From: Cyanophora paradoxa CCMP329
Taxonomy: Eukaryota > Plantae > Glaucophyta
DNA: 64,000 nt
Direction: 5' to 3'
NCBI GenBank assembly: GCA_004431415.1
Contig: QPMI01000514.1
Span: 248,001-312,000 of the forward strand
The position numbers were made by a program, and so were the translations under genes. Of this stretch, positions 1-59,910 are shown piece after piece (within the stretch, counting starts at the first letter, position 1; each line of letters opens with the position of its first letter). Below the pieces are notes generated by a model that worked only from the letters and a program-made list of their open reading frames with translations, was not told the origin of the DNA and made no database searches.

Positions 1-1597
1 CCCCGCATAGAGTGGACCGCCCGGCCCTAGAGAAGCTCGGGGGGTGAGGGGGGAGGGGACGTTAGGGCAGGGATGCCTCGCTGGGCGGCGCTGACAGAGG
101 GGTGGGGGGGCAGTACCACCGGGTGATCGAGAGCTACGCGCAGCTCATCTTCTGCGTCGTCGTCGAGCGCAAGCTCTGGGGTCCGCCCCGCCCCGCCCGA
201 TCGCGATGCATCCCTTGGCCGCCGGGCGAGGCATCGAGCGCCGAGCGCCGAGGGGCGGGGGCGGGGCGTGCAGGGCTCATCACGTGCCACTGCCGTCACC
301 CGCGCTTCGTGCCGGCGGCCTCGCGCAACGCCCTCACGCCCCTCGTGCAAGTCTTTGGCAAGTGCCTCGAGATGGTGCGAGCCGGTCCATCGCGCAAGCA
401 GCTGCTGATCGCCCCGCCCCTTTGCGGCTGCGCTGGGCCGGGCGGATCCGCATCGGAGCCCCTTCAGATCGGCTCCCTTGCGAGCGCTCGCAATTGAGAG
501 CGGCGCGCGCAGATCTACCTGGACCGCAAGCGCGAGGCTGAGATGCGCGTCAAGCGACTCTCGCTCGAGGTGCGCGCGGCGGCGCCGCAGTCGCCGTCCC
601 CGCACCTTCGGCCTTGGTCTGGTCGAACCGCGCCCTCGGGGCAGATGTTCTCGCGGCTGGCGAGCGACCCGGACGGCATCGCCGCCGACCTCTTCCTGCC
701 GCCCGCCGCCCGGCCCCACCCAGAGGTCACGCTTTCCCTCCCCGCCCCGGCCGGCCCCGGAGGCCTCGGCGGCCCCGCCGGCCCCGCCGGCCTCCCGCGC
801 CGGGGGAGCAGCAGCACCAGCAGCAAGATTGATAGGTGCGCGCCCTGCTGGCAAGATGGGCCGGCGCCACGCGACCCACCCGGGTGCGGCAGCATGGAGC
901 GGCACTCGAACACGCTGCTGGACATCGTCGACTGCTGCGGGGCGGCCGTCGTGCAGGCGCTCGCGCCGGCCTCGCCGCCTGGCGGCAGAGAGGGCTGACT
1001 CGGGGCCGGGGGCGCAGGGGGGCCTCATCACCGCGGCGGGGCTCGTCCCCTCCAACGCCGAGATCCTCGCCCTCGGTGCGAGAGCCGCCTCCCGCTTCCG
1101 CCCTGGCCCCGGGCGGGTCGGCCGGCGACGGTGCGCCGGGCGGACGCTCGCCCGTGACGCCGCCCTCGCGGGGGCGCGCAGTCGACGTGATGAAGAGCCT
1201 GCCGGCGGCGAGCCACGAGAGCAGCGAGGAGCAGACCGACATCCTCACCAGCCTCGCCCTGTCCGCCCCGCCCCGCCCTCGCCCTGGGCGCGCCCCGGGC
1301 CCGATGGCGGCGCGGGGGCGCGCAGGCGGTGCGTGTCGGAGGTGCCGAAGCGGACGGCGACGCTCTGGTTCGCTGAAAGCGCCGTCAGCGAGGTGCGCGG
1401 CGCCGAGCGGGGCCGAGGGGGCGGGGCGGTGGGCCTCGCGCCGCTGAGGGACGCCGCGCGGGGCGCCAGATGGCGACGTGCGCGGCGGGGATGGCCCTCG
1501 GGTGGTTCGGTGGCTTCGCCGCCGCCGCCGTCGAGCGCGGCCACGTCCTCTGGGTCCGCCCCGCCCCCCTCCCGCCCCTCCCCGCCCCTCCCCGCTC

Positions 1598-1629
<32 letters not shown>

Positions 1630-4600
1630 GCAGGTCCAGATCTAGCGATCCACCCGCAGCTTCGCGAGGCTATCGCGCATCTTAACCAAACGAACCTGCT
1701 TAGCCAACGAAACCAATTGCAAACTGACTAATACAAACTAACCAAAACATAACTGCCAAGCCAACGAAACCAGTGACAAATGCGAACTGGCTGAACTGAA
1801 CGCTGCGCAGTTCCGCGAGGCGAAGTCGCGGGCCGTGCACTGGGCCGGGGACGTGGGGCCCTACACGGTGCGCGCCTCGTCCCGGCGGCGCCGGGTGCGC
1901 GGGATGGGAGGCGGGTGCGACGTGCGGGCTGGGCGCAGGTGCGGGAGGGGGTGATGGAGGCGCGGGCGAGCCTCGAGATCTGGCGCCAGCTCGTCGCCGA
2001 CCGCTGCCCCGTGCGCGCCCCCGCCCAGCCCCCCTCCACCGGCCGGGGCCTCCGCCCACGCGCTCACCGGAGCCTCGCGCCCGCGCCCCGCGCCCCCTCC
2101 TCCTCACCCCCCTCCCCTGCGCCAGGCGTGGACGGAGACAGACGTCTCCGCTGTCGCCGCCTTCGCCGCCGCCGCGCGCAACGCGTTCGTCCTCATCGGC
2201 GCGCCCCGCCCCGCCCGCCCCGCCCCGCCCCGCCCCGCGCCTCGTGGCTCGGCTCCGTCTGCTTGGGTCTGAGGGGGCGGGCGGGAGGGCAGAGGGCCTC
2301 TCCGCGCGGCGCGCCTACGACCGCCTCAAGGGCATCCAGGTCAGACGGGGCGGACCCCCGGCCTCACTCACTCGAGTTACGACGGGGGCGGGGCTGAGAG
2401 GGGCGGGCCGGGGCGGGGGCGCGCAGGCGCTGACGGCGCAGGAGGAGTACGAGCAGCTGCTGGCGAGCCTCCCCGTCCCCATCGTCATCCTCGACTCGGC
2501 GGTGCGCCCGGGCCCAGACCCAGACCCAGGCCGAGGCCGAGGGCGCCGGGCAGCTGCAGGCCCGGGCGCTCGCTCGCTCGCATCCCCCCGCGGCAGAGCC
2601 GTGCCCTTGCACGTAGAAATCGCCCTAAATGTAGGTCTGCGGGGGCGCATGCGCAGGGCACGGTGCGGCAGTGGAGCGCGAAGATGGTGCGCGCGCGAGC
2701 GGGGGGCGGCTGGGGCGCGTTGGGGTTGGAGCTGAGGGCGGGGCGGGGCCAGGCGGACATTCTGGGGCGGAGCGGGGAGGAGGCGGTGGGGCAGGCGTGC
2801 CTCGCCGCCTTCAACCTCGACGCCGACTCCGAGGCCCGCCCGCCCCCGCCCCCGCCCCGCCCCGCCCGCGCAGCGGCGCTGACGGAGCGCGGGGCGGCGG
2901 GGGCAGGCGTGGCGGACCTTCTCGGACGTGATCCGCAAGGCGAACCTGCACGGCTTCACGACGACCGGCGTGGAGGTCGGCCCCCGCCCCGCCCCATCCG
3001 ATCCGATCGGATCGCAGCGAGCGCCGCGCTGACGGCGCCGCCCCGAACCCCCGGCCCCGCGCGCGCTCGCGGTCGCAGCTGGTGGTGCCCTCGCGCACGC
3101 GGGCCCGCCGCCTTGTGCTCCTCGTCTCCGTCGCCCCGCGCCGCTTCCTCCCACCCCACGTGCCCCCGCCCGCGCCTCTCGGCCCCTTCGCGCAGCACTC
3201 TGATGGCAGCCGGGCGCAGGGGACGCCGGCGGGGGCGCAGGCGGCGGGGCCCTCGCTGGGGTACGGCGCGATCGTACTCTGCCAGGTGCCCGCCGCCGGC
3301 CGCCCCCGCGTAGCCTGCAGCCCCCGCGCCCGCCCCCGCCCCGCGCGCCGCCGTCATCGAGGCGGGCGGGCCGAGCGGGGGGGGAGCGCTCTAGGGTCGC
3401 TGCCGACGGGGATGGTGTGCGTCGGGTGCTGGTGGTGATGGCGGGGCGGGGGCGCGCAGGAGATGACGCGGGAGCGGGAGCTGGTGCAGGCGGCGCGGGC
3501 CCTCGAGGCGCGGGCCCTCGAGGCCTCCACCGCCAAGTCCCTCTTCCTCGCCACCCTCTCCCACGAGGCCCGGCCCCTCTTCCTCCCCTCACTCCCATCC
3601 CTTCCGATCGCATTCGATCTGATCCCGCCCGTGCTCGCACACGCCCACCGCAGATCCGGACGCCCCTCAGTGCGCCGTCGGCCCGGTGGAGGGGGCGGCG
3701 GTGACTGACCTCGCCCCCGCGAGCGCAGACGGATGCCTGGGGATGCTGCAGCTGACGCGCGAGCTGCCGGGCCTGCCCGCCGAGGGCGGCGAGTACCTCG
3801 AGAAGGTGCGCCGCCCTTGCCGCCCGCCGCCGCAGCCGCGCCGGCCCCCCGACCGCCCCCCCGTGCGCGCGCAGGCGGTGCAGTCGTGCGAGATCCTCCA
3901 GACGATGATCTCCTCGGTGCGGCCGTCGGGCGGCCGGCACCTTGTGACCGAGGCCCCTCACCGCCGCCTCGGCCCGGGCCGCCGTGGTGCAGGTGCTGGA
4001 CTGGACGCTGATCGAGGCGGGGCGGCTGGCGCTGCGCACCGTCGAGTTCGACCTGCGCGCCATGGTCGCCGCCGCCGTCGCCATGGTCGCCCCCAAGGCC
4101 CGCCCCCGGCCCCGCCCCCGGCCCCCGCACCTAACCTTCGAGAACTTCCAATATCCGGAGTACCCCCGAGCCCGGCCCAGCGCTGCAGAATTCGAAGCTT
4201 AGCAACGAGCGGCCCCTGGGCGAACTAGGGCTTTAACGGCTTTGATGCAGCAGCTTTGATGCGCGCGGCGGCTCCCGGCCTGGGGCCTCACGCGGGGCGG
4301 GCAGGCGGCAGAGAAGGGCCTAGCGATCGAGCACAGCTTCGCGGACGGCTTCCCTTCCTACGCCGCCGGCGACTGCGACCGCCTCCGCCAGGGTCCGCGT
4401 CCCCGCCCCGCCCCCGCCCCCCGCGCCGGCGCCTGTTGAGGGCGACGGCGGCGCGCGGCAGTGCTTCTGAACGGCTTGACAAACGCGGTCAAGTACAGCG
4501 AGCGCGGCGTCATTGCGGTGAGCGCGGGGCCCGCGCCGGGGACCGCCTCGGGGCCCCCCCGCGGAGCTCGAAGCGCTGGCGTGGCCCCTAGAGCAGCGCA

Positions 4601-6985
4601 GTCGATCCCCGACTCGACCCGGAAGCTGGCGCGCTGACGCGGCGGGGCCGGCGGCAGGTCCGCTGCACGGTGCTGGACGACGACGTCAAGTCGCTCACGA
4701 CCGTCGATTACGTCGGCTTCCGCCTCCGCATCTCCGTCTCCGACCAGGGCCCGCCCCGCTCCCCGCTGCCCCCCCCTGCTCTCCCCCGCTCTGCTTCGGG
4801 CCCTGAGTGCGCGCGTGCAGGGCGGGGCATCGCGGCGGAGAGCATCCCCAAGCTCTTCCGCATCTTCTCCCGCGTCGTCGACGACGACCGCCCCGACCCC
4901 GGCCCGCCCTCCCCCGCCCCGCCCCGCCTCGCTTGGCCGCGCTGACGCGCCCGGCCCTCACAGGCGGCACTGGCCTGGGACTGGCCATTTCGCGCCGCCT
5001 CATGTGAGCTCTGATCTGACTCGGCTCAGCTCAGCTCTAGATTTGATCGGCGCCGCGGCCGCCGCTGACGGCGCCGGGGACGGCAGCGAGCTGCTGGGGG
5101 GGACGGTGGAGGTGGAGAGCGCGGTCGGCGTCGGCAGCACCTTCCACTTCGAGTTCCCCATCACGGTCCCCGGCCCCGGCCGCCCCGCTCTGCCTCCCAG
5201 CCACCGCCCACCCCCGCTCGCGCAGGTGCTCCGGCGCCCCCCGCTGCACGCGACGGTGCAGCGGGCCGAGGGCGCGATCCGCAACGCCGCGCTCCCCCTC
5301 GCGCCCCTCCCGTCCCGCCCCTCGTGCGGCTCTCCGACGGCGGCGGCCGCTCCGGGGGGCGCGACTGCGTCGTCGTCGGAGGCGGCGGGGCGCGGCCGCC
5401 CGGGCGCCGCAGCAGCTGCCCTGGCGAGATCCCGCTCCACCTCCACCCCGACGCCGCCTCGCCCCGTGGCCGGCCGGCCACCTCGCCCCGCCCCGCCGCC
5501 GCCGGGTCCGGAGCCGGGGCGCCAGCCGCCGACGCGAGGCCGGCCGCCGCCTCTCCGCCTGCGGCCTCGGGCGCCCCGCCCCCTACGACCGCCGCCGCGG
5601 CGACTCCGGCCAAGACAGCTGGGGGAAGCCTCAACGCGGCCGATGCGCCGGGCGCTAGCGCCCCGCAGGTCCTCCTTGTCGAGGTGCGCGTTCGATTCCC
5701 GCCCGCGGCTGATTGTCAGCGAGTCTGTAGCTGGGGGCAGTGGCGCGCGGCTCCAACATAGAGCTAGATCAGATCAGCGGTTTACAGGCCGCATTGCAGA
5801 CAGAATCACACCCTGCTGATATCGCTATCCGTCGCCGATACGATATATACGATCTGATGCATAGTGACGGCGGGCGGGGCGGGGCCGGGGGCGCAGGACA
5901 ACAAGCTGAACGCACAGGTGGCGGCGAAGCTGCTGAAGGCCTGCGGCTGCGCCGTCTTCCACGCCTGGGGTGCGGCCGGGCGGCACCGGCCTCCCTGCCC
6001 CTCTGACGACGTCCTCTCTCCCCGCCGCCCCTCAGACGGCGTCGAGGCCGTCGACATGCTCACCACTCCGGTGCCTCTCCGCACCTCTCTCGCCGGGCCT
6101 GCGCCCGCGCCCCCCTCGGCCTTCCCCTTCTCACCTCCCAGCCGCACGGACGCGCAGGACGCCCCCTCTACGTACGACCTGGTCTTCATGGGTGCGAGCC
6201 CGGCACGCCGCGGCGCCGCCCGGCGACTCGGAGCTACATTGCTTTCTCCCGCTTCCGTCCTCCTGCTTGAGGATGCGGGACGAGATTGAAAGAATGTCGG
6301 GGCTCTAGATGTGCTGGCGATGGGTGGAGAGGTTGGGCTCTGCGTGCGTGCGTGCGGGGCGGGCTGACGGGGCGGGGGCGGGGGCAGACGCGATGATGCC
6401 GCGGAAGGACGGCCTGCAGGCGACCCGCGAGGTCCGCGCCCACGAGGCCGCCCTCGGTCCGTCCCATCCGCCCCCCACGCGCCCCGCAACGTAGCCTCCC
6501 TTCTAGAGCCGCCCACGAGGCCGGCCACGGTGCAATGCACTGTCGGTTATAATTACCCCATTCTACGCCTCCGCCCCGCCCTGCTGCCTCCTCCTTCGCA
6601 TTTACATCTCACGCCGGGGGCTGGGCGCGCGCAGGTCTGAAGCCGATGCCGATCGTCGCCCTCACTGCGAACGTGGCGGCCGAGTGCCGCGACGAGGCCC
6701 TCGCCGCCGGCCAGGACGACTGTGCGCCGCCCGCCCCGCCCCGCCCCGCCCCGCCCCGAACCAGACCCTCCCGTTGTTGGAATAGTTCGGACGCCCATAT
6801 AGCCTGCAGAGCGCGTGCTTCGCATCCTCTAGATCTAGCCGGCTTTGGTTCGGCGCGGCCGATCGTGATCGCGGCCCGCCGCAGACCTGACGAAGCCGAT
6901 CCTGAAGAAGGACCTCGCGGCCGCCGTCGCCAAGTACGGCCTCCCCCGCGCCGAGGCGCGCCTCCGCGCCCCCCGCCGCTCCTAG
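1..6985 (+). CDS. Phytochrome-like hybrid histidine kinase PhyX1 (GAF end-PHY-PAS-HisKA-HATPase-REC), multi-exon, 5' part outside window
   Basis: Spliced exons read YHRVIESYAQLIFCVVVERKLWG|LITCHCRHPRFVPAASRNAL (phytochrome GAF end); LW|FREAKSRAVHWAG...MEARASLEIWRQLVADRCP|AWTETDV (PHY tongue); LASLPVPIVILDS (PAS); KSLFLATLSHE|IRTPLNG (H box); NGLTNAVKYS, DQGRGI, GGTGLGL (N, G1, G2); VLLVE|DN, VFMDAMMP, LTANV, LTKP (REC). Stop TAG at 6983-6985. Confidence 0.9.
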
Positions 6986-8968: not shown

Positions 8969-9051
8969 CCTACAGCGCGAGCAGCTCGCGATCGCTGGAG
9001 CGCGCCCGCGATCGCTGGCCCTCGAGCCACGTCTAAGCGACGGGCGCCGGC

Positions 9052-9307
9052 TGTCGGATGGGAAGAAGCCCACCCGGTACGCCCTGCGCGGTCTAGCGCA
9101 GGCGGTGGTGATAGCAGGAAGCACAAGTGGTCTATTCACAAGTGTACCCGTACAGGGACGGCGTACCCCTCAGATGGGGCCGCGCCCGGCGCTAAGTCAC
9201 AACACAGAGAGCGCTACAAGCTAGAAGCTTACTAGCGCTAGACTAAGGCTAGAGGCTAACCATAGACTACCAGCTAACCTAGTCCGAGGGCATCGCGGCA
9301 TGCGACA
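9052..9307 (-). repeat. 3' LTR of the Gypsy element
   Basis: Direct repeat of 15964-16219 with TG...CA termini. Confidence 0.95.
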
Positions 9308-9940
9308 ACTCCTCACTCTGCATACGATGCGTCCGCGCATCGGACCGCGCCAAGCTCGTCTGCACGCGCAGCGGGTCTCCCAAATCGCGGCGGCGACGGA
9401 GCAGGAGCTCCACTCGAGGTAGATAGGTCATCATCAGCAACCAGCAGCACCAAGTCGACGAAGTCGGGGTAGATAATAAGGGTAGAGGTAGTAGGATCCG
9501 ATACCAGGTATGCATGTACCTAAGCAACCCTGGCAAAGCTCGAAAGTGCAGAAAAGCATAGTGGCTGAAACCCGTGACTGGCCCAAAACTCGCTCCGTAC
9601 GGCGAGCACCGCAGGAGAGGGGCACGGATGGGAAGTTTCACCGCCTCGGAAGAAAACACGAGGAGGTATCCGGGCCACCCATCAGGCCCAACGAAAGAGC
9701 AGGGCACGATAGAGTGGACCGCCGGCCGTACGCCTTTCTTGGGCCGCACGCGCGCAAGCAAAGCTCACACTCTACCACTCCTCTGAGCTCTGGGCCCATA
9801 CTCCAGAAAAGGGAACGAAAGTCTTCAAGGTGCAAACCGCCACCAACCCACACTTTGCCCGACAAGACAGCACAAGTGTGATCGGCCGACGTCCCTTGAG
9901 AGAGCCAAGGTTGAGGCAAAGCTGGCAAAGAAATCTGCCC

Positions 9941-11600
9941 TCACAATTCTTCCACCAAGATCACATCGGTGTCGCCCTCGGCCGCCCCAACGGGGCCCTC
10001 GGCGCCGACATCAGGGACAATATTTGTGTTTTGGTCAGGTTGCGTAGAGTCCGAAGAGGGGTCGATGGGGTCCACCGTATCCACGTCCGGCTTCCGTGGC
10101 CGACCCAAGCGTGGGCGAGCTTGAGACTCAGAGAGCCGTGGCCGGAAAGGAAGCATGCAGTCGATGTGAGCCACGGTCTCGCGCAGAGGGCGGACCCGGG
10201 TGTCACTCAAGGCCGAATAAGGTTTAGCCGATCCTTTCACCGTGTAGGTGTAACCGCCAGGGTTAACGCCGGTAACCGTGTAGGGACCGACCCACGAATT
10301 GTACAGGCCTTTATCATGGTCACCCATCCAGCACAAGACCTTGTCGCCCACCTGGAAGCGACGGCGATGCGGCGGGTTGCCTGTGCGAGCTACCATACGG
10401 CTCCGATAGAACCGGCGATACTCGCGCGAGGCAGCATCGGTGCTAGCCGCGGCCTTCGTCATAGCGAGGAGGTAGTCGGCTGGATGCGTGTGGTCGGGGT
10501 TCGAGAAGCGAACGCCCGCGCCGAAGCGCACTTCGCAGGGAAGGTGCACATCCACGCCACGGTGCAAGACCATGGGCGAGAAGCCGGTGGCGGAGTGCAC
10601 GGTCGTTCGCAGGGCCAGGACGATGTCCGCATTGTACATGGGCCAGTCAGAGAGAGGCCTCTTGTGCTCGCGGCACATCGCGTAGGCGAGTGTTTTGTAA
10701 ACGCCACCGAGGCGCTCGGCGCCACCGTTGGTAGCGTGGTGGTAGGCAGCAGCATGCACGAAGCGCGTGCCCTTCTCTTTGAAGAACTCGTTCCACAGGC
10801 CCCCACCAGCTGGGAACCGCGGTCCGTGAGGATGCGCGCAGGGACGCCTTCATGCATGTAGAAATCGATCGCGGTGGCCAGTAAAGCCTCGCCAGAGACG
10901 CGGGCTAGCGGATAGATATAGCAGAACTTGGTATACGCGTCGACGTACGCGATAATGTACCGCAGTCCGTCTTCATGCATATCCAAGTGGAAAATATCCA
11001 CCTGCCACAGGTCGCCTCGGCCCGAGGGCTGTATCACTTGGATAGCGGTACGGCGGGGCTTCACTGCCTTCGCAAACTGACAATGGGGGCAGGACCGCAC
11101 GAAGCGCGCGATCGAAGCGTACATGCCAGGCCACCAGAATCGCTGAGCAATACGACGCGCGATCACGTGGGCTCCGCGGTGGGCCCAGCCCTCGTGATAG
11201 GCGTACAGAACTCGGTCGATCCAAGCGTCAGGCAGTACGGGCAGGAACCGGCCGGCAGGCACTAGCGGGTTGCGCTCGATGACGCCGTCTTCAGCGAGGC
11301 TGAAGTCGTCGGCCAGCCTCACGAACCGCTCCTTGGCCGCAGGCAGTGCGCGCACGAGGAAGAGCAGGGGTCTGCCCCTCGTTTGAAGCCACGTGAGCAC
11401 CGAGTCGGATTTTCACCCTTCTCATAGTAGCCCATAAGCTTCTTACAGAGGGGGTCTTCCTTCTGTGCGGCGAGCAGGCGTTCCCGTCTCTCGAGCGGAA
11501 ACATGCGTCGCAGCGAGTCCGGGAGTGCGCCATCAATTGCAGGCGAAGGCCCGCAGGCCCAGGCGTCGAGGACAGTGTCCACAAAGACCGGCTTGCATGG
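9941..11600 (-). CDS. Gypsy integrase (HHCC zinc finger, rve core, GPY/F module), split by apparent frameshifts
   Basis: YHEGWAHRG...CPHCQ; WQVDIF; VDAYTKF; ILTDRGSQ; NGGAER; WVGPYTV, spread over ORFs 11319-12029, 10459-11400 and 9941-10759. Confidence 0.9.
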
Positions 11601-11892
11601 CGGGCGGACTTCCCGACCTCTGGGGTCGAGCTCGACCCACCGCCGCGGGGCCAGCGTCTCCACGGACACCACTTCGGAATCTGGAGCCTGAGGGCTCGGC
11701 CGTGAACGGCCTCCGCGGCGATGCAGCGGCTTCGGGGCGTCGGGCGCGGTAGGTTGCACCCGCATCTGATTCCGCGCCGTCTCGGGAGACAGCGAACGCC
11801 GACGGGACGGTCCCGGGGGCGGCTCCCTCTCGACGGGCTCCGGCTCCCAATCCAAGTGGATCGGCTCCGGCACCTCGCTCTGGTCGGCCGGG

Positions 11893-15421: not shown

Positions 15422-15963
15422 TCTTTCACGAAAAGCTTGCGGCGTAAAGCCAAGCTTATCGATCGGAATGTGCGCGCTCGGGCGCCTTCGAGGTCCGCGG
15501 TCGCGCGACGAGGCTTCTCGAAGCCAAGTCGCTGAGGTCGTCCGAACTCCGTGGAACCCGCGGAGTCAGGCAAGCTACGCAGCGACCACTCAGGGTCCTG
15601 TTTCGCGAGCTCTGCTCTCTGGGCGGCGAGCTACGCGGCGACCGCGAGGGTCCCGTTTCGCAAGCCTTTTCGACTCCGGTCGTTTCGCTCGGTGCCTCTG
15701 GCAGCCGAGGTGAGCAAGCTCACGTCGCACGAAACCGGGACGCCCCCGGATCGTGTTTGCGCTCAGTTTGCGAGAGCAGCACGCCCCAGTTCGTCAACCT
15801 GCTCGCTCAGCCTTTGCGGGCACGGGCGGGGAGCGTCCGCACGCTCCTCGACCTCTTTCGAGGTTCTCCCGTGCGCCGGCTGAGCTGCGGGTGCTGGGTT
15901 GGGCTGGTTGCTGAGGACGGTCGCTGAAGATCGCTGGTTCGTGCTCCGTAGGCACGTGGCGCC

Positions 15964-16219
15964 TGTCGGATGGGAAGAAGCCCACCCGGTACGCCCTGCG
16001 CGGTCTAGCGCAGGCGGTGGTGATAGCAGGAAGCACAAGTGGTCTATTCACAAGTGTACCCGTACAGGGACGGCGTACCCCTCAGATGGGGCCGCGCCCG
16101 GCGCTAAGTCACAACACAGAGAGCGCTACAAGCTAGAAGCTTACTAGCGCTAGACTAAGGCTAGAGGCTAACCATAGACTACCAGCTAACCTAGTCCGAG
16201 GGCATCGCGGCATGCGACA
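15964..16219 (-). repeat. 5' LTR of the Gypsy element
   Basis: Direct repeat of 9052-9307. Confidence 0.95.
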
Positions 16220-25787: not shown

Positions 25788-28700
25788 CTACAGGGGCCAG
25801 AGCAGGAGGGGACGGCGCAGGAGGCGGGCGACCACCAGGGATCCCCAACGGGACATTCCCACGAACGGCAAACTCCGCAGGATTCCGGAGGACAGAATCG
25901 ATGTCACGCGAAGAGACGAGGTTGTCAGCACCGCCCGAAGAAGGAGCGCCGGACGAGTCAGAATCAGAGCTTGAACTAGAACGATGAGAACCGGTACCAG
26001 ACTCTGAATCATGTGCGTCATCATCCGAGGCAGCCTGATCATCAGCGTCAGCAGCAGCCAAGCGAGCGCGCCGCTCCTCCAACAAGGCCGAAGCCTGCGG
26101 AAGGGTGAACTCGAGGTACGACATATTTCTGTCCCAGGCGGCAACAAGCGCGGCGCGGTTGTAAGAAGGTGCATCAATGTCAGCCTCCTCAAGATCGCAC
26201 CGAGCGCGAGCAACCTGTTGGATGGAAAATACGCCAGCAAGGATCGCTCCAAGTGAGCGAAGGCAGAAGGCGGGGTTAACTTTACTGCGCAAAATGGGTC
26301 CAGATAAATCCGGAACCGAGAGGATGTGGAAGAGAGAGAGGTCAGGCACTGCGACCTCTTCACGCTCATCCGGTGGAAGAGTAGAAGCCCAGAAATTCAG
26401 GCGCTCACGAATGAAATCCCAGAACGAACGAGAAAGCGGGCACTCAGAGAAAACGTGCGCGTGAGAGCGAGCAGATCCGTCATGACAAACCCGACAGAAA
26501 CGACGGCGGGGCGACTGTTGCTCGCCCAAACGATACAATTTGAAATGCAAACGGTAAAGAGCATCGATCCAAAGCATCGGGAAACACTGAAGGACGACAA
26601 GATTAGGAAGACGGGACGGAGACAAGGCGCCGGGAAACCCCCACTTAGCATCGGGCATCTGAGCGTGGCTAGACACATCGCGAAGCCGCTGGACCTCAAG
26701 GCAGTAGAAGCGACGAACAGAGGAGAGGCGGAGAGGGAGCATACGAGCGAAAGTGAACGCAAGATTATCAAGAGAAAGAAAGGCCGAAGGACCTGCGCCA
26801 AGAACAAAAAGGCCAGGCAGGGTCCCGCGACGAAAAGAGAGGAAGACAGCGCTGAAGCAAACATGCAGCGGGAGCAAACGGGACAGAATTGAATTGGAGC
26901 TCGAGGATAGGCCCACAGGGTGGGAAGCCGCAGGGCGGCAAGGAACGCGCGGTACGTAGTCCAGCACCCGTGGAATTATCTGGTTATCGCGAACGGGGAA
27001 GGCAACAAAAGTACCACTTGGGCCTCGAAGGAGAGCAAACGAGGCGTCCGGTCCGGACCACCAGAGATGCTGAGGCGGCGGTGCAGGGCCTCGAGAACCT
27101 GGCGCCAAGTAGCCGGGAGCGCAGAGCACAGACTAGGGAAAAAGGAGTGGAGGGCGGAGGAGGCAGCTGCTGGAGCCCGGAACCCCGGGCAGCACAATCC
27201 CAGATATCGCAGACCCGCAGCAAGCCGGACCGTGCACAGCGACTCCAGTCGACCTCGTCGCCGGGAGTACTGAACAGAGGATTGAAGAAAAGAGGTTGGG
27301 ATAACACTTCGGGAGAGTTACGAGGTTGACACACGCCCTGGCGCTGAGCCCACTCGGAGAGAGTCTGCTTCCAAATAGGAGGCAAGTCAAGTCTGTCAAG
27401 TGGGAGGCGGAGCGAGACAAGGGCGGGGCCATAGGAAAAAGGTGCCAGCTGAGCGTCCAGTTTGCTCAAGAGGTACTCCTTCCAAGGAGCCGAACAAGAG
27501 GGGTCAGCGAGCAAGGCCACCCACTTCATTTTCAGCGATAACGAAAAAGCTCGAATATCCGGGCAGTTGAGACCACCTTGACGCCACGGCAGAGGAGAAA
27601 TATACTTCGAAAGCTGCCCGCTCACGCCAGCAAAAGCGCGAAGCTTCTCTTGCCATGTCGAATACTGAGCATCAGGGGGTCAAGCAAATATAGAGCATAA
27701 TGTAGGGACCCAATAAATACAGCCCAGGCAAGGAGAACGCCGGAACGCATCGGCATGCGATAAGTCTTCGCTTGCTGGACACGGATATCAAGAGCAGCGT
27801 TCTTTTTCCGCCAGAACCGAGACAGATCGGGCTCTAGTGGAAAGCCCAGGTATTTTCGAATTTTTTCAGCGGGAGGGAGATCCGTCACCTGAAGACGCCG
27901 CCAGGGCAGTCCTCGACGCTAGGCCAGGCATGTGCGGGATATCGCGGAGTGGAAGAAGGCTAGATTTCTCGAGATTAATAAGAGCTCCAGAGAGCCGGCA
28001 GTATTTATCAAAGCACTCTTTCCAGAAAGGCAATTCGGTAAAAGACGAGATTAAAGGAACAGTGTCGTCTGCAAACTGGAGCACCTTGCAAAGAGAGCTA
28101 GAGGACAAGCGGACACCTCGTATACGAGCATCAGCATTAATCAAAAGGGCTAAAAGGTGTGTGCACAAATTATATAGATAGGGCGAAAGGGGCCACCCTG
28201 ACGTACACCGCATCGAATGGGGAAAGGGGCGGAGGTCCAGCCGTTAATGTGAACAGAACCCTGCAGATCAGAGTAGAGCAGGCGGACCCACTTGATAAAT
28301 TGGGACCCGAAACCGAACTGTTCGAGCGACCAGAAAAGGAAGCTCCAGTTAACGCGGTCATAGGCTTTTGAAAATCAAGAAATCCGAAGCACAGCTGTTC
28401 GAGTGCAGGATTACCGCCCTCGTAATGCATGAGAAGATAAACAAGCATAACCTGGTGCACTGCGGACCGACGATGAATAAAGCCAGACTGAAAGCGGGAT
28501 ACAAGACCAGACATGAGTGGCGTTAAGCGGTTGGAGAGGGCGCGCTCGACTGCACGCTCTTCGACATTAGAGAGAGAAATTGGGCGGCGATTTGCAATCA
28601 AAGTAGGGTCCGTTGCCGGTTTAGTAATAGGAGTAATGAGGACGTGCCGCAAAGACTCGGACGGCTGCCCAGACTCATACATAGCAGCGATGTAAGCACA

Positions 28701-30271
28701 GAAATCGGGCCAATCTCATCAAAAAAGTGAACGTAGAATTCAGCAGGGAGACCATCGATGCCAGGAGACTTGGCTCCGCCAGACATCTCCTTAAAAGCAC
28801 GAAATAGTTCTCCAGACGATAAGTCAGAGTCAAGATCAGCAGACTCAGTAGGGAGCAGGCGGTGAGGGGAATAGAGAGAGGCAACGCCAGACCGCTCAGC
28901 TAGCGACCGATCAACCACGGCCTGAGCTGCAGCGCCGTCATATAGTTGAGCGTAATAGGCGGAAGAAAGCTCGAGCAAAGTGCGGGGGTCGTCCGACGCG
29001 GCCTCTGGGCCTTCGGTGTCGAGGGCCCGAAGCCCCTCCGTGAACTGAGCATGAGAATCCGGTAAATAATGCTCAAAAAAAGCTTTACTAGACCGTCCAT
29101 CTTGAGTTGCGGCAAAACGAATTTCTTTGCGTGAATGCTGTCTGGCATAGTCAGACACAAGCGAATTCAAGCTGCGCATCATAGAAGTGCGCAGTGTACG
29201 GAAAGCGACATCATCAATAGAGCCAGCGGCGTGGCGACGGATGAGAGCCTCGAGAGCTCGAACAGCGGAGATGTAAGCGTCCTTCCGCCTGCGCTTCTCA
29301 TCAAGCTCCCAGGCCCGAACACGACGCTGGAGCTCGGATTTGAGGGCGTCCCACCGACGGACGCGATCTGTAACTAATGGCCACGCGGCGCGCCAGTCAC
29401 GAATTATAGTAGAAATGAAACCAGAATATTCCGGGCATGTGCCATACGCCGCCCAGTTCATGCGCCAGCGACCGGGGCCACGGCGAGAGATTCCGGGGCT
29501 TTAAGTGTGAGATAGATGCCTATATGATCAGAATTGCGTGGCTCGCCGACTGCAGAGTAAGCCGTCCACGGCCGAAGCGAGACGGCCCAATCGCGGAGGG
29601 AGGACGAGAGGAAAAAATAATCGAGCCGGGACTCAATCGTCCCGCCCGCCGGCCGCGGCCGGCTCCAGGTTTTAAAGCACGCTCTAGTGTGAGGCCCGGC
29701 ATCGAAAAGGCCATAACGAGCTCGGATCAACTCAAAGGCGTCGGGGGAGGGGTTCCACGACTAGGGCCGGGAGCATCAGAGGGAGCTCGTGGAAATTAAA
29801 ATCTCCTCCTAAGATGAGGCGGCTGTCGAAAGGAACCACGGACTCGAGAGTATAAAGAAGAGTTTCATAGAAACCGCGACGCTCGGAATCATCTGTAGGA
29901 GCATATACATTGCAAAAATAAATGGGACCAAATTTGGTCTCGAACAAGAAAAGTTGAAGTCGAGGACTATCAGCTGGAGTCAACAACCGAATTTGAAAAG
30001 GGGAATCACCAGGAAAGAGAGCGGCGACCCCCTGAGTGGCCTGACCACTAGGGTTATGAGACCAAAAAGAGGGGGCCGATCCCCAGGCGCGCGCGAGGCG
30101 CTTGGATAATGAGGAAGAAGAAACATGAGTCTCCTGCAGGAACACAGCTGAATGCCGCGCACTATCGCGGAGGCAATCAAAGAGAAAAGAACGATAAGAT
30201 TTGCCTAATACATCATGAAAAGCTCGATCTAGTTTGCCTGCTACGTTCAGAGAAAGAAACCTAAACGTCAT
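25788..30271 (-). CDS. LINE ORF2: AP endonuclease + reverse transcriptase + C-terminal Cys/His motif, broken by several 1-nt frameshifts
   Basis: SLNVAG, FLQETH, NVYAP, GGDFN, SRLDYF, SDH (APE); KSPGIDGLPAEFY, RPISLSN, QSGF, LDFQK, LSPYLY, QFADDT, KYLG (RT); CRVCH...HVFSEC. Confidence 0.93.
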
Positions 30272-30402
30272 TTACGGGGGTGGTGCAGCTCGAGGGACAA
30301 AGCCCAAGAGCCGGAAGAGAAAACGAGGGCCGGGGCGAGGGGAGGGCCGAGGGATCAACCCCGCCGCGATACGCAGCGGGAATCGATGGGGGCCCGAACG
30401 CC

Positions 30403-31532
30403 TCACGCCGATCCCGAGGGGACGCAGCAGCGGCCTGCAAGATCGAGAAAGTCATGCAAGAGAGAAAGAGAGGAGATCGGATCGATTGCGAGGGGCGGGC
30501 CATGAGGCCGGAAAAGGCCATGAGGCCATCGAGAGTACGAATTGCAAAAGCGAACCTGCGCAGCGCGCTGCAGGTCCTCCTTCCACGGGAAGATGATGTC
30601 GAAGTTGATGGGGTCGTTAGGCCGGCGCATGATCGCGCTGGGGCCGGTCTGGTCGGTCCAGTTCTCGCCGTTGTACTGCTCCAGGGAGCGCGAGCGGCCG
30701 CTGATCGTGACGCCCGTGCGGGTGTGCGGGGCGTGCTCGGAATGCTGCGCGCTGTGACAGCCCGGCCGGTTGCAGAACGCCCAGCTGCCGCTGATCTGAA
30801 CTGTCTCATTGCCGAACTTGTGAGAGAAAGGCAACCGCGCCTGACTGGCGACGGCGGGACCTCCGAGAGAAACACTTTGATCCAGACGCTGTTGCCATTG
30901 ATGCGATGAACTTTGGACGGGCTGAAGCCGCGCTGCACGAGCCAGTTGGAAAAGACACTATGCGCATTGGAGGGAGCTGAATAGAAAGGGCCGAAGCTGA
31001 CGGAGGGATCGCGGAAGCCGGCCTCGCGCGCGGCCTTCGAATCCAGAGGCGGCGGGGGGGCGCCGTTCGCATCGGCCGGAAGCTGAGTGAAGTCGAGGAC
31101 GGGAAGGTACTGGAGCGCTGATTTGCGGAGCAGCTTCTCGGCTGCATCACCGTGCACCGCCTCGATGGTGAGCAGGAGTGCGCTATTCCCGTAGCAGCAC
31201 ACTGCCACGGGGGGGTCGAGGCTAGCCAAGCAGTCGGCTACGCTGTGACGAATCTGGGTTCTGCTGGGCCCCTCGGACAGCGCGCGGAGGGCGTTGGACT
31301 GAGAGGTCGGGGCGGTCAAGCTGAAATATCTGACCGTCTGGCTATAAAGCTGCGCGGGGTCGATTCGGCTCGAACAGCTCGGGCTGATGGTACTAGGGAA
31401 CTGGGCGGCGAATACTGCCGCGGCCGCAGCTACCGGGGGCCGAAAAGTCGGACGACTTCGCATGGGGCCGCGGGCGGGCCCGCCTCCCGGACGACGGGCC
31501 GCTGGGGACACACCGGGGACGAAAGCTAACAT
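30403..31532 (-). CDS. LINE ORF1 (one probable frameshift)
   Basis: ATG 43 nt inside the element 5' end, upstream of ORF2; Cys/His cluster CNRPGCHSAQHSEH in the continuing frame 30403-30834. Confidence 0.7.
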
Positions 31533-31973
31533 GTGGCTGAGGCTGGGGAGGCAGGAAGGTGGAAGACAAGGCGATCGCAGTAATATGGTAGCGCAGTAGT
31601 TATGTCAGCGCGGTAATTAAGTATTACACGGTACAGCCTGTACAGCTCGGTACAGCCTATAGCTACCGTAGTACAGGCTACAGCGGTAGTACAGCCTACA
31701 GCCTACAGGTGCGGCTGAGGTGCCCCGCGGCCGCCGGGCGGCGCCGGCGTGCGCATGCCCGCCGCGGCCGGCGCCCGGGGCCCCGGGCCACCCCGGTCTC
31801 CGAAGGGACACGCCATGTGACGATTCACTGACGAATGGTCACGACTCACGACTCATGAATCGAGTCATGATCACGAATCGATTTTTTTCGTTTAATCATG
31901 ATTGAGTGATCATGAGTCGCCGTCGACTCGCCGAGTGGGATCGATCATCGGTGACATCGGATATCGATCGATA

Positions 31974-32183
31974 CCGCACTTAATTATTGCGCCCCCGAAA
32001 TAATGCGTTTAACGCTGGCAAAACGCATTAGTTTAATTGGGGGCGCATTAATATCGAAGCGCTGAGCCGGCGCTAAGAAAACTGCGTTATGTACCCCCCT
32101 CACGCAGCCAGAAGGCTTCAAAGGGTCCAAGTCCAAAAACGCATTAATTGTAATTACTGGCGCATTACTTAAGTGTTTTACGG
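31974..32183. mobile_element. Tc1/mariner/pogo-like MITE
   Basis: Imperfect TIRs CCGCACTTAATTATTGCGCC ... GGCGCATTACTTAAGTGTTTTACGG, flanked by TA on both sides; AT-rich and noncoding. Confidence 0.55.
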
Positions 32184-32943: not shown

Positions 32944-35900
32944 ATGCTCGGCGCCGGCATAAACCTCTGGGATCTCTTCGAGGATGGAGTGTCCCTTCAG
33001 CGCCACGGGGCTTTGCTCTGCGTGCATTGCTCGTCCCTTTGCATCCATTACATGTCGGATGGCGCCTTCGAGTGGCTCGGAGTAGCGCCTGTCCCCCTCG
33101 ACCCGGGCGGCGTTGATATCTTTCACGTCTTCCCCGGCGCGAAGCAGATTCTGAACAATGAGGACTTCAGCTCCTGGAACGCAATCTTGCTCACTACTGC
33201 GTCGGGTCGATCCTTCAAGTGGTGCGGCTACTGCCGGGCTGGGCGGCCCCTTCCGATCTATGTCCGTTTCGACCCGCGCCCGGCACGCAGCTCCGTCCAC
33301 ACGACCGACGACGGTTACTTCGTGCGCTCGCCCGCGAGCTCGCGCGCTCACTGCGCCCGCCACCTCGCCCGCGCCCGCCCGCCGACTCGAGCTCCCGCCT
33401 GCGCGCTCAGGTCCTGGAGCTCGAGGAGCCGCTGGAGGACCCGCCGGCCTTCGTCGACCGCGTCAACGAGGCCTGTGGTGCGCGCCGGCGCCGGCGCCGG
33501 CCCCGAGCGAGCCGAGCCGAGCGGCGTTGCGTGCGCGGCGCAGAGCGGCTGCTGCTGATCGATGGCGAGGAGGAGCTCCTCGAAACGGTCGTCTCGGAGC
33601 TCGCCGCCCTCGCCGAGACCGCGGATCGAATCCTCGTCTACCGCCTCGCTCCGTGCGCACCCTCTGACACGGGGAGGCGGGGCGACCGCCGGCGCCGCCC
33701 CCCCGGGAGGCGCGGGACGTGCGGAGGGGTCCGGGGAGGCGTGCGGCGGGGCCTGCGCCGCGGCTGCTGACCCAAAGGTGGCGGGGGGCAGGGGCGGGGG
33801 GCACGGGCAGGTCGTCGCGGAGCGCCTGAGGCACGCCTCCTGGCCCCCCTACCTGGGCCTCGCCCTGCCCCCGGCCGAGATTCCCGTCCCCGGTCCGCCC
33901 CGCCCCGCCCCGCCCCGCCCAGCCCCGACCCCAAGCCCCTCGCTCCCGTCCGAGCGGCTCACCGAGGCGACTCGCAGCGGCGCGGCACCGCTACATATCG
34001 TTCTCGGAAGGGACGAACAGCCTGGTCCAGGTCGCGCCGAGCGCGCGGCACCCGCCCGACCTCTCCCGCGCCCTCCTGCTCGGCCACACCCCGAGCCAGC
34101 GGCAGTACTACGAGGCGAGCGCGCGCGCCGCGCTGCGGGGCGCCTGCACGGCGCCGTGCCGACGGGGCCCCGCCGGCAGGCCCTCGGGGTCAAGTCCGTA
34201 CTCGTCTACAGCATCGAGCTCCCGGGGCAGGGCGTCTGGGTCCGTCCCCCCTCCCCCCCTGGCCCCCGCCCCGCCCGCGCCGCCACCCTCCCTCTCGTCC
34301 GAGCCGCCCCCGCACCCCCGCAGGGTTACCTGTGCCTGCACGCCGCCTCCGAGGCGCACGTGCCCATCGACAGGCGAAACGGTACGAAGGGGTGCGTGGG
34401 CCGAGGGGCCCTCGTGCGCTGACCGGGGGCGGCGGGGCGCGCGCGCAGCGATGCTGCCCCTCGTGCGCACCTTCTGCGGCACCTTCAAGGGCATCAAGGC
34501 GCGCGCCGGGCCGTGCTCGCGGGGGGACCATGCCCCCATACCCGCTGACCCGCTGACCCGCCCCGGCGCCTGCACCCTCGCCCCCTCCTGCAGGCCCGCC
34601 TGCGCATGCGGGACGAGCACAGGGCCCAGGAGCTTCAGATCAGGGTCTTCTCCCGCATCAAGGTGCCCCCCTTCCGCCCCGCCCGGTCGCCCGCCGACAT
34701 CGCTCCTTGCGCCAGGGCCAGGCGGACCTGCTGGCGGGGCTCCTCGACGGCACCCCCTCCTTCGCGGACGCCGTGCCCTGCTCCGCCTGCGCCGTCATCG
34801 CGAATGGGGCGGTGCGCGCGCGCCCCCGGCCGCCCGCCCCGACCACCCGCCCCGCTCCCTTTCGTATGCCGTACCCGGCAGGTCGCCTGCTCGACGGGGG
34901 CGGCCCTACCCGTCCACTTTCTTGTCCGCGCGTCGAAGGTTCCCGCTTGTTTCTCCCCCTTCCTTTCTCGCTTGTCCCGTTGAGGCGTACCCCCCACAGA
35001 TTCTCCAGGCGTCGACGAACTCCCTGGATGGCGTTTGGGCGTCCGGGTACCCCTCTTCGCACCCCAGTTTCGAGCCCTGCGCGGCAGCTGACTGCCCCCG
35101 CAGGGCCCTGGATGCGGGCCGCCTCTGGGTCCGCCCACCCCTCATCCTCTCCGCCCACCCCTTCCCCCCCCCCTCCCTGATGACGGAACCCCCGCCCCCC
35201 AAAGCTCACCGACCGACTCGGCGAGCTCCTTCCCGACGCGGTCCGCGTACCGCGCTCCGCTTCTCCCCTCCCCGCTCACCTTTCGCCGCAGCCGAACTAC
35301 ACGCCGGTGGCCGCGGGCGCGCTTCTCGTCCAGGTCTCCTGGCGGATGCAGGTTCGGATCCCGCCGCTCCCTTTTCTGTGCCCGCTGACGGCCCTTTCGC
35401 TCAGGTCTACGTGTAAGCGCTTGCCGCCTCCGAACCGCTCGCTCCCTCGTCTCGGCTCCGCACGGGCCCACGCGTCAGTCTCGCAGAATGTGGCTCCGGC
35501 CGGCGGCGGAGGGCCCCGTTCAGTTTGCGGGGATCGAGCCCGGATGCGGGCCTTCCAACCCCGCGCCCCCGGTCACCGAGCGGTCCCCGCCGGCGGCCAA
35601 CGGCGGTGCGCACCGCCTCGGGAGCCCCCTCGCGCCGCGGGCGTCGCGCGCCATGGAGCGAGCGCGTGGGTGGCGTGGGGCGGCGGGGGGGCAGGGCGGA
35701 GGAGCAGCGTGGTGCTGGACCACTGCGAGCCCTGGGAGGAGGCCGCCCTCAACGTCGCCCAGGCGAGAGAGCCCGGCGCGCCCCGCCCCGCCCCCCTCAC
35801 CTCGCCCCGGGCCCCACCCCAGGCCATCGGCCGCACCATGCACGAGGCGCTCCGCATCAACAAGATGATCGCGTGCGCCCCGCCCCGCCCCGCCCCGGGC

Positions 35901-38900
35901 CCTCCCCCTGCGCACGAGCAGCTCTGACGGCGGCTCCTGGGGGCCCGCAGGGGGTCCGCTCAGCGGCTGGACCTGCTCGCCGACCAGATGCACCAGATCA
36001 TCTCGAGCGGCGAGCACGCCTCCCGCCCCGCCCCGCCCCTGCCCGCTGAGGGGGCGGCGCGGGGCGGGCAGTGCCCGTGGTGATCGTGCGGATCGACAAG
36101 GAGTACCGCATCCGCGAGTGGAACCCCGCCGCCGAGGCCCGCCCCCCCTCCCTCCCACCCTCTCCCCTCCCTCTTCACCCGACCCTCCCCCCAGGCCGTG
36201 TTCGGGTACCCCCGGTCGGCGGTGATCGGGGCGGTGGCGATGGAGATCCTGGCCCCCTCCCAGTTCGACGTGGCCGACATCCTCAGGTGAGCCCGGGCCC
36301 GGGCCCGGGCGCCCCCCGTCCTGCTCTGGCCTGCCGCCTCCCATGCACGAACCATCTGTGCTGACCGCCCCCTCAGCTCGATCCTGTGCCGCGCGCTCGA
36401 CGGCATCCAGACGCGCGAGTTCGAGATCGCCCTGCAGCCCCGCCCCAACGTCCCCAGGCGACCCCTCTCCCGGCGCCCCGCCCCGCGCCCTCTTTCCCCC
36501 CTCTCATCCGCCTCGCTTTCCGCGCGCGCAGGCGGCTCTATCTCCTCACGACGGGCGCCGAGGTCCAGCGCGGTGGCAGCATCAACGGGGTACCCCACCG
36601 CCCCCCCCCCCTCTTACCCCTAGTTGAGTACCCCCTCACCTTTTCTCTGGGGCAGGCGATCTGCGTCTTCCAGGACGTCTCGGCCCTCCACCAGGTCCCT
36701 CCTTCCTCGGCCCCGCTCCATCGACGTCTAACCCCCCGCGCCCCCCCGCCCCGCCTCCCTCCCCCGCAGCTGACCGCCGAGAAGAGCGCGAACGCGGCCA
36801 AGGTGCACCCCCCCCCCTCTCCCCCCCCCCCCCCCCCCGAGGCGGGCTCCGCCCGGCGCCTGACACGGCGGGGACACCCCGCGCAGTCGTCTTTCATGGC
36901 GTCGATGTCGCAGAGCATGCGGGCGCCCTCAACGGTGCGGTAGCCCCCTCTTCCACCCCCCCCCCTCTCCGCCCCCCGGCCCCCCGGCCCCCTTACGCTC
37001 CTCCCCGGGCAGGCCTGATTGGGATGCTGTGCCTGGCGTCGGAGACGGAGCTGCCCCAGGATGTGCGCAACTACATGTCCACCGTCCGCCCTCCCGCACG
37101 CCCTCCCCCGCTCTCTTCGCGCCGCCCACCGCGCTTTCCTTCTCTCCCCTCGCTCCCCCGGCAGGCGACGGACTGCGGGGCGTACCTGCAGGAGCTGATC
37201 TCGAACATCCTGGACGTCTCCCTCGCTGAGGCCAAGCGCCTCGTCCTCAAGAAGGCGCGCCCGGCGGCCAAGGGCCGGGGCCCCGCCCCGCCCCGCCCCG
37301 CCCCGGCCTGATCTCCCGGCCGGGCCGCGCCCGTGCAGGAGCCTTTCGACTTGGCCGCCGCCGTCGACTCCGCCGTCTCCGTTGCTACCGCCCGCGTGCG
37401 CGCCGCGCCCCGCGCCGCCCCGGCCGTTCCGCCCCTGCATCTGGAGCGGAGGGGGCAGGCGGGGGCGCGGAGGGGCGACGTGCGGGTCTCGCACGGGGCC
37501 GTCCTAGAGCGCTTCTGCATCGGCGACGCCGGCCGCCTCAAGCAGGTCCGCAGCAACACCGCGTGAACTAGAGGCTTGCGGGGGCATACGCTTCCCCTAC
37601 GCTTTCCACCCCCACTTCCAACCCCTCCCCGCCCCCCCCCCCAGCCTGACGCCCCTCGCCCAGGTGCTGATTAATCTCCTGTCGAACGCGCTGAAGTACT
37701 CTGAAGAAGGCAGCCCCGTCGACGTCGAGGCCCGCCCTGCTTGGCCCCCTTGTGCTCTGCTCCCCTCGGCTCAGCTCGGCTCTGGCAGGTGTCGGCGCCG
37801 CGGGTGGCGGAGGCGCAGGCGACCCTCCGCATCGCCATCACCGACCGTGGCATCGGTGCGCGGCACCGGCGGAGGGGCGAGGTAGAGGGGTGGGTGAGGG
37901 AGGGGGGGGTGTCGATGAAGGGGGACCGGGGCCCTGCCCCGCGTGCGCTCGCCCTCGCCCGCCCTGACCGGCGGCGGCGGCGGGACCAGGCATCAAGCCC
38001 GAGGACCAGGCGCGGCTCTTCCAAGTGCCCCCTTGTTCCCTCCCATCGCCTCCCCGCTTCTCCCCCCCTGACGGGGCCCTTCTGCGTGCGCGCGCGCAGC
38101 TCTACTCGCGGGTGCGGGACCCGGCGGCGGCGGACCCGGGCGGCTGCGGCATCGTGCGCTGCCCGCCCCGCCGCCTCCTCTCCCTCCCCTCCTCACCCCC
38201 CATCGGCGCTCAGGGCCTGTGGCTCTCGCGGGACCTGGCGAGGCTGATGGGGGGCCAGCTCGAGTGCTCCTCCAGACACGGCCAGGCGCGCTGCGCTCCG
38301 CTTTGTTTTGCTTCCCCTTGCCTTGCTCCGCCCTCCACCTCCAACTCTGACCCGGCGCCCCGCAGGGCTCGACGTTCACCCTCACTGTCCCCTTCCCGCT
38401 GCACATCGCCGCGCCGGGCCCGGCCCCCGCCCCCAGCAAGGTCCCGCGCCGCACCTCTCCCATCCCGTTCTCTCTCTCGAGCGCCACCCGCCCCGTCCTG
38501 ACGCCGGCGGGCGGGGCGGGGCAGGCGCAGGCGGCGGCGCAGGCGGCGGGGGCGCGCAAGGGTCAAATCCTGCTAGCGGAGCCTTCGCCCACCTCGGCCC
38601 TTGTTGCCCTGAAGGCGCGCCCAGCGCAGCTCAGGGCAGCTCGAGGCGGGGCGGGGCGTGACGCTCGTGGGGCGCAGTACCTGGAGAAGGCGGGGCACGG
38701 GGTGGTGCACGTGGCGACGGGCCCCGAGGCGGTGGAGGAGCACAGGGAGCGCCTCCAGCGCGGCGAGCCCCTCGACCTCGGTCCGCCGCTAGAGCGCACT
38801 GCTCGGAGCCCGCCCGGCGGCTGCGCGGCCCCTCACCCGCGCCTTCCCCCGCAGTCCTCCTCGACACCGACCTGCCGCAGCTCAGGTGCGCCGCGCCCCC

Positions 38901-39388
38901 CGTGCCCCGCCCCGCCCCCGCCCCGCCTCCGACACGGCCGCGGCGCAGCGGGTACGACGTCGCGCGGCGCATCCGCGAGTACGAGCGGGCGGAGCAGCGC
39001 GTGCGCCCCGCGGCGCCGGCCCCCCGCCCCCCCTCGGCCTCCGCCGCCTGAGGGGACGCCGGGGGCAGCCGCCGGTGCCGATCCTGGCCGTCTCCACGCG
39101 TGTCCTCCGCGAGGACGAGCTCCGCTGCTACGGTCCGCCCCCGCCCGCCCACCTCCCAGCCTTCTTCTCTGTGCCGACGCCCCTCGCCTCCCCTCGGCAG
39201 ACGCGGGGATGTCGGAGCTGCAGACGAAGCCGCTCCAGTGCGAGCGGCTCCTGGAGGCCGTCGCCCGCCTCATCGGCGCCGCCGACCAGCGCCGCCTCTC
39301 CGCCCACGGCCGCCCCAGCCTCGCCCCCGCCCCCGCCCCGCCCGCCGGCCCCGCCCCGGTTCCTCTGTCCGCTCGCCCCGATCACTGA
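32944..39388 (+). CDS. Degenerate phytochrome-like hybrid kinase PhyX3 (PAS-GAF-PHY-PAS-HisKA-like-HATPase-REC) lacking bilin Cys and phospho-His
   Basis: LQRHGALLCV (IQPHG equivalent); VLELEEP; ADRILVYRL; PPYLGLALPPAEIP; DLSRALLLGHTPSQRQYYE|ALGVKS; VW|GYLCLH; WLRP..VQFAG; HCEPWEE; PAS VPVVIVRIDKEYRIREWNPAAE; KSSFMASMSQSMRAP; NLLSNALKYS; DRGIG; GCGIGL; ILLAEPS; VLLDTDLP; QTKP; stop at 39386-39388. Start codon uncertain; one C appears missing near 36926. Confidence 0.88.
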
Positions 39389-59826: not shown

Positions 59827-59910
59827 CGGAACGAGCAAGAACAACAGTAAGGGGGGGCCAACCGGCCGGGGGTACTAGTTCGTTCGATTTATCCACCGCG
59901 CAAAGCAGTC

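Follow-up and report, generated by a model that had tools for sequence, protein, structure and literature searches.

The window analysed here is a stretch of 64,000 nucleotides of the Cyanophora paradoxa CCMP329 genome (contig QPMI01000514.1, positions 248,001 to 312,000 of the forward strand), and all coordinates below refer to it. It is GC-rich, with abundant short introns, and it contains three adjacent phytochrome genes, designated X1, X2 and X3, between which no further host gene was found. The models of these predicted genes were built by hand from splice signals and then checked computationally. They comprise 37, 22 and 44 exons, respectively, separated by clean introns (donors GT or GC, acceptors CAG or AAG) and free of internal stops, which bears out the initial annotation of three phytochrome-like genes within 40 kb. 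Phytochrome or kinase exons other than those of X1, X2 and X3 were not found in the window, and a fourth phytochrome within it was ruled out on these grounds.

The genome of this alga is represented by a PacBio assembly with 25,831 genes (Price et al. 2019; PMC6704402), in which the mean intergenic distance is 770 bp, the mean intron length is 86 bp, and stretches without Illumina cover were kept as PacBio sequence. Scoring against a profile built from 80 bacterial photosensory cores gave 255 bits for X2, 170 for X3 and 95 for the partial X1. The G+C content at third codon positions (GC3) of X1, X2 and X3 is 0.96, 0.78 and 0.92, while that at second positions is near 0.5. X2 also differs from its neighbors in intron G+C content (0.54, compared to 0.77-0.79 in X1 and X3, where GC3 is 0.92-0.96), although it is located between them. 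Residues are numbered according to Cph1, as in PMC11880981.

Gene structures and conserved residues

Of X1 (114-6985, + strand), a hybrid phytochrome kinase gene, the window contains the 3' part, whose 37 exons encode 896 amino acids. The visible domains are the C-terminus of GAF followed by PHY, PAS, HisKA, HATPase and REC, whereas the 5' part, with PAS, the DIP motif and the bilin Cys, lies upstream of base 1 and hence outside the window. The first visible residues, at 114-119 (+), are the equivalents of Tyr263 and His264, the latter being a signature of tandem-Cys phytochromes. Residue comparison placed the H-box His (SHEIRTPLNG) at 3562-3564 (+), and also identified the adjoining Glu, the N, G1 and G2 boxes, and the Glu-Asp, Asp, Thr and Lys-Pro residues of the receiver. 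The H-box His, ATP boxes and canonical receiver initially ascribed to X1 are thus all present, and with a single PAS, a His-containing kinase and a receiver, X1 has the output region of a GPS-type phytochrome. Its description as a complete phytochrome kinase stands for this output part; the bilin site is beyond the window and the tongue is altered, reading ARASL instead of PRxSF (Pro and Phe are missing). A low-complexity linker (5226-5683) is ambiguous and may be read as an intron or as containing one frameshift. Within an X1 intron (1680-1800), a G run of 28 nt and a stretch rich in A and C stand out from their surroundings, possibly marking a small insertion. X1 is probably a light-regulated hybrid histidine kinase of the tandem-Cys type; the relay residues were observed directly, while a bilin site would be expected upstream.

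X2 (20244-16191, − strand; 22 exons, 642 amino acids) encodes a sensor-only PAS-GAF-PHY phytochrome. Its DIP Asp is located at 18431-18433 (−) and its tandem Cys-Cys, composed of the bilin Cys and a Cys replacing His260, at 18190-18195 (−), both identified by residue comparison. Arg172, Tyr176, Asp207, Arg222, Arg254, Cys259, His290, WAG, PRNSF and WxE are retained, and 38 of the 55 conserved core positions examined are kept. The claim that X2 keeps all photosensory motifs has to be abandoned, since the substitutions His260 to Cys, Tyr263 to Phe and Tyr198 to Phe define a tandem-Cys pocket rather than a canonical one. The tandem-Cys signature (Cys259-Cys260, His264, Val274) is present in full, but the positions characteristic of TCCP (Leu/Ile/Met272 and Ser288) are occupied by Gln and Thr. 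The protein ends after PHY, as first noted, with a stop there in both the present allele and the one preceding a transposon insertion (see below), and its last helix ends a few residues beyond this domain. The C-terminal PAS-kinase-receiver output of the GPS type is missing, there are no kinase exons downstream, and splicing of X2 onto a nearby kinase was ruled out, because the kinase exons of the window are confined to X1 and X3.

The predicted X2 product starts with MGCGPS, whose Met is the sole in-frame one in exon 1. This start is unique among the 1,041 ATG contexts in the window and is probably an acylation signal providing a lipid anchor. The Cyanophora paradoxa protein tig00020943_g16304.t1 in EukProt is 99% identical to a two-exon frame of X2; this public model begins downstream, omitting the MGC exon, retains the intron beside a micro-exon and ends early, at 371 amino acids. 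Micro-exons of 8 nt were found in both X2 (19193-19200) and X3 (35405-35412).

X3 (32944-39388, + strand; 44 exons, ∼1,067 amino acids) has the full PAS-GAF-PHY-PAS-HisKA-HATPase-REC layout of a pseudo-phytochrome. Residue comparison revealed that Glu replaces the DIP Asp (Asp207; 33877-33879, +) and that Ser-Gln occupies the site of the bilin Cys-His (Cys259 and His260; 34094-34099, +). Arg254 is replaced by Leu, the segment with Arg222 is missing, PRxSF and WxE are lost from the tongue and pocket, and no knot Cys was seen in the N-terminal extension. Thirty-two of 50 conserved core positions are kept. The kinase fold is retained with intact N, G1 and G2 boxes, and the receiver keeps Asp57 and Lys109, with Asp13 replaced by Pro. 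Identity to X1 reaches 41% in DHp, 40% in the ATP domain and 33% in REC, compared to 21-23% in the sensor. Despite a branch of 3.0 substitutions, X3 has a GC3 of 0.92, 43 canonical introns and no stops over 3.2 kb. Judged from such features, X2 and X3 look maintained rather than decayed, and X3 is probably a light-blind, maintained pseudokinase; the residue losses were observed, and the role proposed below draws on an analogy with DivL.

The initial annotation had reported that X3 keeps the full architecture but lacks the bilin Cys, the DIP Asp and the H-box His. The layout and the first two losses were confirmed, while the His call comes from an exon (36887-36934, +) that is one base short, having 48 nt where 49 are required. 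All single-base insertions were tried. The one scoring best against X1 falls in a C run and yields Gln-Ser-Met-Arg-Ala-Pro-Leu-Asn-Gly (score 81), with Gln at the His position, whereas one alternative insertion restores His-Glu at the expense of Arg and Pro (score 74). Against bacterial H-boxes the His reading scored 15.5 and the Gln reading 14.6. Two copies of a long interspersed nuclear element (LINE) located between X2 and X3 differ from each other by 12 one-base indels, all 12 in C/G runs, and by one mismatch in 2.8 kb. Since a long poly-C intron tract precedes the X3 H-box exon, the missing base is probably an assembly error of the same kind. Were X3 as error-prone as the LINE copies, it should contain 8.5 indels; only one is observed, which indicates that unique DNA was better polished, although a local lapse is still plausible. 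On balance, the loss of the H-box His is probably genuine.

Transposable elements, clustering and relatives

Three transposable elements are inserted among the phytochrome genes. The two LINE insertions reported earlier between X2 and X3 were recovered with APE endonuclease and reverse transcriptase (RT) domains and separate target-site duplications. The first, a 5'-truncated copy (20947-23775, +), is bordered by a 26-bp duplication (20921-20946 and 23776-23801). The second is a long, frameshifted copy encoding the endonuclease and RT (23830-31575, −), bordered by a 15-bp duplication (23815-23829 and 31576-31590). Because each copy has a duplication of its own, an origin of the 2.8-kb inverted repeat by read fold-back was ruled out. 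The copies are arranged tail to tail (20921-31590) and each is inserted into the same short motif, which occurs again near 31985; insertion looks target-site specific. The third element, a Ty3/gypsy long terminal repeat (LTR) retrotransposon between X1 and X2 (9052-16219, −; 7,168 nt), had not been recorded. It encodes RT, RNase H and integrase, lies in the same sense as X2, and has 256-nt LTRs that are 100% identical, as well as a 5-bp target duplication, features of a very recent insertion. This element entered X2 four codons before the old stop and supplies the present last 8 codons and stop. The detached ancestral 3' end of X2 is still recognizable at 9033-9051 (−), with the old stop at 9033-9035 and a copy of the target duplication at 9047-9051. 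As the old stop lies only four codons further, truncation of X2 by the element was ruled out, and X2 was therefore sensor-only before the LTR element arrived. The element may now provide the X2 polyadenylation site.

Removal of the LINEs gives an empty-site ATG-to-ATG distance of 2,084 nt between the divergent X2 and X3, in agreement with the ∼2.1 kb estimated earlier. This is 2.7 times the genome mean of 770 bp (PMC6704402), and the spacing is thus not unusually close. The ancestral X2 stop is 2.05 kb from the X1 stop. By chance, the expected number of runs in which three family members lie side by side is only 1e-6 to 2e-4 (for family sizes of 10-50). The clustering of X1, X2 and X3 is therefore non-random, and either local duplication or selection holds the genes together.

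The nearest relatives of X2 are two proteins encoded on other Cyanophora contigs, tig00021133_g18910 (570 amino acids, 60.0% identity, Cys-Val) and tig00000178_g12773 (530 amino acids, 54.8%, Cys-Cys). Both models stop right after PHY, like X2, and contain only PAS_2, GAF and PHY according to Pfam. The three sequences form a clade with 100/100 support on a long stem. The predicted fold of g12773 comprises a full PAS-GAF-PHY core (model confidence, pLDDT, 88.6) and matches the PDB cores of PsBphP and Cph1 (TM 0.77-0.80), as well as that of RpBphP3. Extra cysteines are a feature of this sensor-only clade: the first GAF strand contains RVC, and g18910 and g12773 carry others just ahead of the bilin loop. 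They could influence how the bilin attaches or how the proteins respond to redox conditions.

In the tree, the bacterial sequences are separated from the five Cyanophora ones with 97/99 support, a result that calls for caution in view of the long branches and the absence of described GPS proteins from the tree. X3 forms the longest branch in both trees. The sensors of X1, X2 and X3 are only 21-29% identical pairwise (28-29% by BLAST), and the pairs share 1, 2 and 3 exact intron positions out of 10-38. Their sequences mark the three genes as old paralogs, and a recent tandem triplication was ruled out by the low sensor identity and the few common introns. Several GPS genes have been listed for C. 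paradoxa by Li et al. (PMC4525182). An alignment-based search for full-length GPS proteins returned bacterial matches only, and neither the X1 N-terminus nor X3 orthologs were found in it.

Beyond X3, a complete gene for an NADPH-cytochrome P450 reductase follows directly (41778-44589, +). NADPH-cytochrome P450 reductases can supply haem oxygenases making biliverdin; the adjacency may be due to chance. An apparent RecD-like helicase gene (∼53300-58600, −) and an apparent chaperonin-60 gene (∼59900-63300, +) were read by eye from translations, and Pfam scans with single frames of these two gave no match.

Interpretation of the locus

We favor, with a probability of roughly 55%, the view that this locus is what remains of ancient local duplications in a large GPS-type phytochrome family whose members later specialized: X1 as a kinase, X2 as a sensor and X3 as a pseudokinase. 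X2, one of at least three sensor-only phytochromes in its subfamily, would bind a phycobilin through two cysteines and have a blue- or violet-shifted dark state, as its motifs suggest. N-terminal acylation would anchor it to the membrane, and the intact tongue could mediate light-dependent binding of partner proteins. In X3, ATP binding and DHp dimerization are probable, while phosphorylation on His would not be possible. Hybrid kinases require a His on the DHp four-helix bundle, and whether they act in cis or in trans varies among kinases of this type. By analogy with DivL, X3 would most likely modulate an intact hybrid kinase, or act as its scaffold, in a non-catalytic manner; its ATP domain could trans-phosphorylate the His of a partner, or X3 could damp the relay. 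X1 is one candidate partner, suggested by adjacency and the 41% DHp identity. The adjacency of the three genes would then reflect their duplication history and not an obligate X2:X3 pair.

Several points weigh against this view. The assembled X3 sequence contains a frameshift, and the very recent LTR element displaced the 3' untranslated region of X2, with possible effects on expression in this strain. Only the hand-built model of X2 begins with MGC, the public one starting later. A word-based search of proteins of 290-1,000 amino acids found no ortholog of the sensor-only clade in other species, and the trees were built without authentic CparGPS or Gloeochaete sequences.

X3, and perhaps X2, might instead be a decaying duplicate or recent pseudogene, which we consider unlikely. 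The −1 frameshift in the H-box exon, losses in three domains together with the longest branch, and the presence of three transposons within 25 kb, one of them in the last exon of X2, all point in this direction. They are countered by the integrity of 86 of the 86 splice sites and of the remaining frame of X3, the retention of its ATP boxes and of receiver Asp57 and Lys109, and the match of the missing base to the assembly error type described above; moreover, the LTR element alters only the last residues of X2. The initial annotation had named decay after tandem duplication as its alternative, which fits poorly with sensors of 21-29% identity, one to three common introns, and intact frames and splice sites.

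It is similarly doubtful that X3 is blind but active, that is, a light-independent hybrid kinase with a truly present H-box His and another stimulus. The single-base insertion producing His-Glu scores nearly as well as the Gln reading against X1, and better against bacterial H-boxes, and the ATP boxes and Asp57 are intact. However, this insertion lies outside C/G runs and destroys the H-box Arg and Pro, and receiver Asp13 was lost independently. Natural loss of His to Gln is common (PMC5361649) and is also seen in P0005. In this phytochrome kinase of bacterial type, encoded on a Logan contig, Gln occupies the position of the H-box His and the GAF Cys-His is missing, so His-less phytochromes occur outside algae.

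Less probable still is a combinatorial network. Here X2 and its two paralogs, as sensor-only receptors of the tandem-Cys type held by a lipid anchor, would signal in trans to blind or catalytically dead outputs such as X3, these would tune an intact kinase such as X1, and selection for co-regulation would have preserved the clustering.

The proposal that prompted this analysis was a split phytochrome, in which the photosensory cores would join membrane-bound X2 to X3 (or X1) in a heterodimer, the output of the partner taking up the light signal. The head-to-head arrangement of X2 and X3 and the direct adjacency of all three genes are in line with it, as is the GAF and PHY fold retained in X3 (170 bits against the core profile). 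Phytochrome signals run from the refolding tongue into the coiled coil that follows PHY, and a single activated protomer can suffice to switch the dimer; plant phyC and phyE work only as heterodimers with phyB (PMC6005682). Nevertheless, the losses in X2 and X3 do not appear complementary, contrary to the earlier suggestion. An X2:X3 dimer would have a single DHp hairpin instead of the full bundle, no phospho-His in the favored reading of X3, and a receiver without Asp13, and X2 cannot form the signal-carrying coiled coil of IsPadC. The pair would therefore be unable to rebuild a light-regulated kinase or a His-Asp relay. Residues of the X3 tongue and pocket needed to relay the signal of a partner (PRxSF, WxE and Arg254) are also gone, the cores are just 25-29% identical, and the intergenic gap exceeds the genome mean. 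The X2 architecture is common to two paralogs unlinked to X3 (on tig00000178 and tig00021133), so pairing with X3 was not how X2 originated. A split system is thus conceivable but the least probable of these alternatives: sensor, His, ATP site and receiver are not jointly supplied by the pair, and the sensor-only type also occurs away from X3.

Comparison with known phytochromes and kinases

The phytochromes of glaucophytes have been described as a few hybrid kinases that retain the His (PMC4525182). Those from the same organism, CparGPS1 (KF597305) and GPS2 (KF615870), share their PAS-GAF-PHY-PAS-HK-REC layout with X1 and X3, and the His with X1, but not with X3, and X2 lacks the output (PMC4525182). 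Compared by sequence alone with TCCP and TCEP (PMC11880981, PMC7332365), X2 and g12773 have Cys259-Cys260, His264 and Val274 in common with these proteins, and X1 has His264, whereas X2 differs in Gln272, Thr288, Phe263 and the missing output domain. A precedent for X3 is provided by charophyte PHYX1 proteins, which are eukaryotic and algal, have lost all known bilin Cys and in some cases carry a receiver (PMC4525182). They belong to another lineage, however, and a cluster with a sensor-only gene was not reported for them in that study.

The pair formed by DivL and the hybrid kinase CckA of Caulobacter (PMC5361649), in which a His-less kinase fold with sensors modulates and localizes an intact kinase, serves as a model for X3 and X1. 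DivL is, by contrast, bacterial, has PAS sensors only, Tyr in place of His and no receiver, and the claim of homology is limited to the kinase fold. RpBphP4 of Rhodopseudomonas palustris is reportedly a chromophore-less phytochrome that is still active as a sensor kinase (a redox sensor); like X3, it has lost bilin binding, but X3 appears to be His-less. Mixed or half-activated dimers that signal are exemplified by the phyC and phyE heterodimers and by asymmetric IsPadC (PMC6005682), whose protomers, unlike X2 and X3, all bind a bilin, have their full length and resemble each other closely in sequence.

We found no paper on a sensor-only tandem-Cys subfamily or a blind pseudokinase in this alga, a weak negative, as the genes may already be named in the main glaucophyte phytochrome literature. 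A three-member sensor-only tandem-Cys subfamily and a maintained blind pseudokinase would widen the picture of glaucophyte phytochromes. Natural sensor-only cores should be easy to express and offer a route to phytochrome signaling without an output domain, while X1 and X3 make it possible to ask directly whether a eukaryotic phytochrome is tuned by a pseudo-histidine kinase. The cluster is real and its members are unusual, within a known family.

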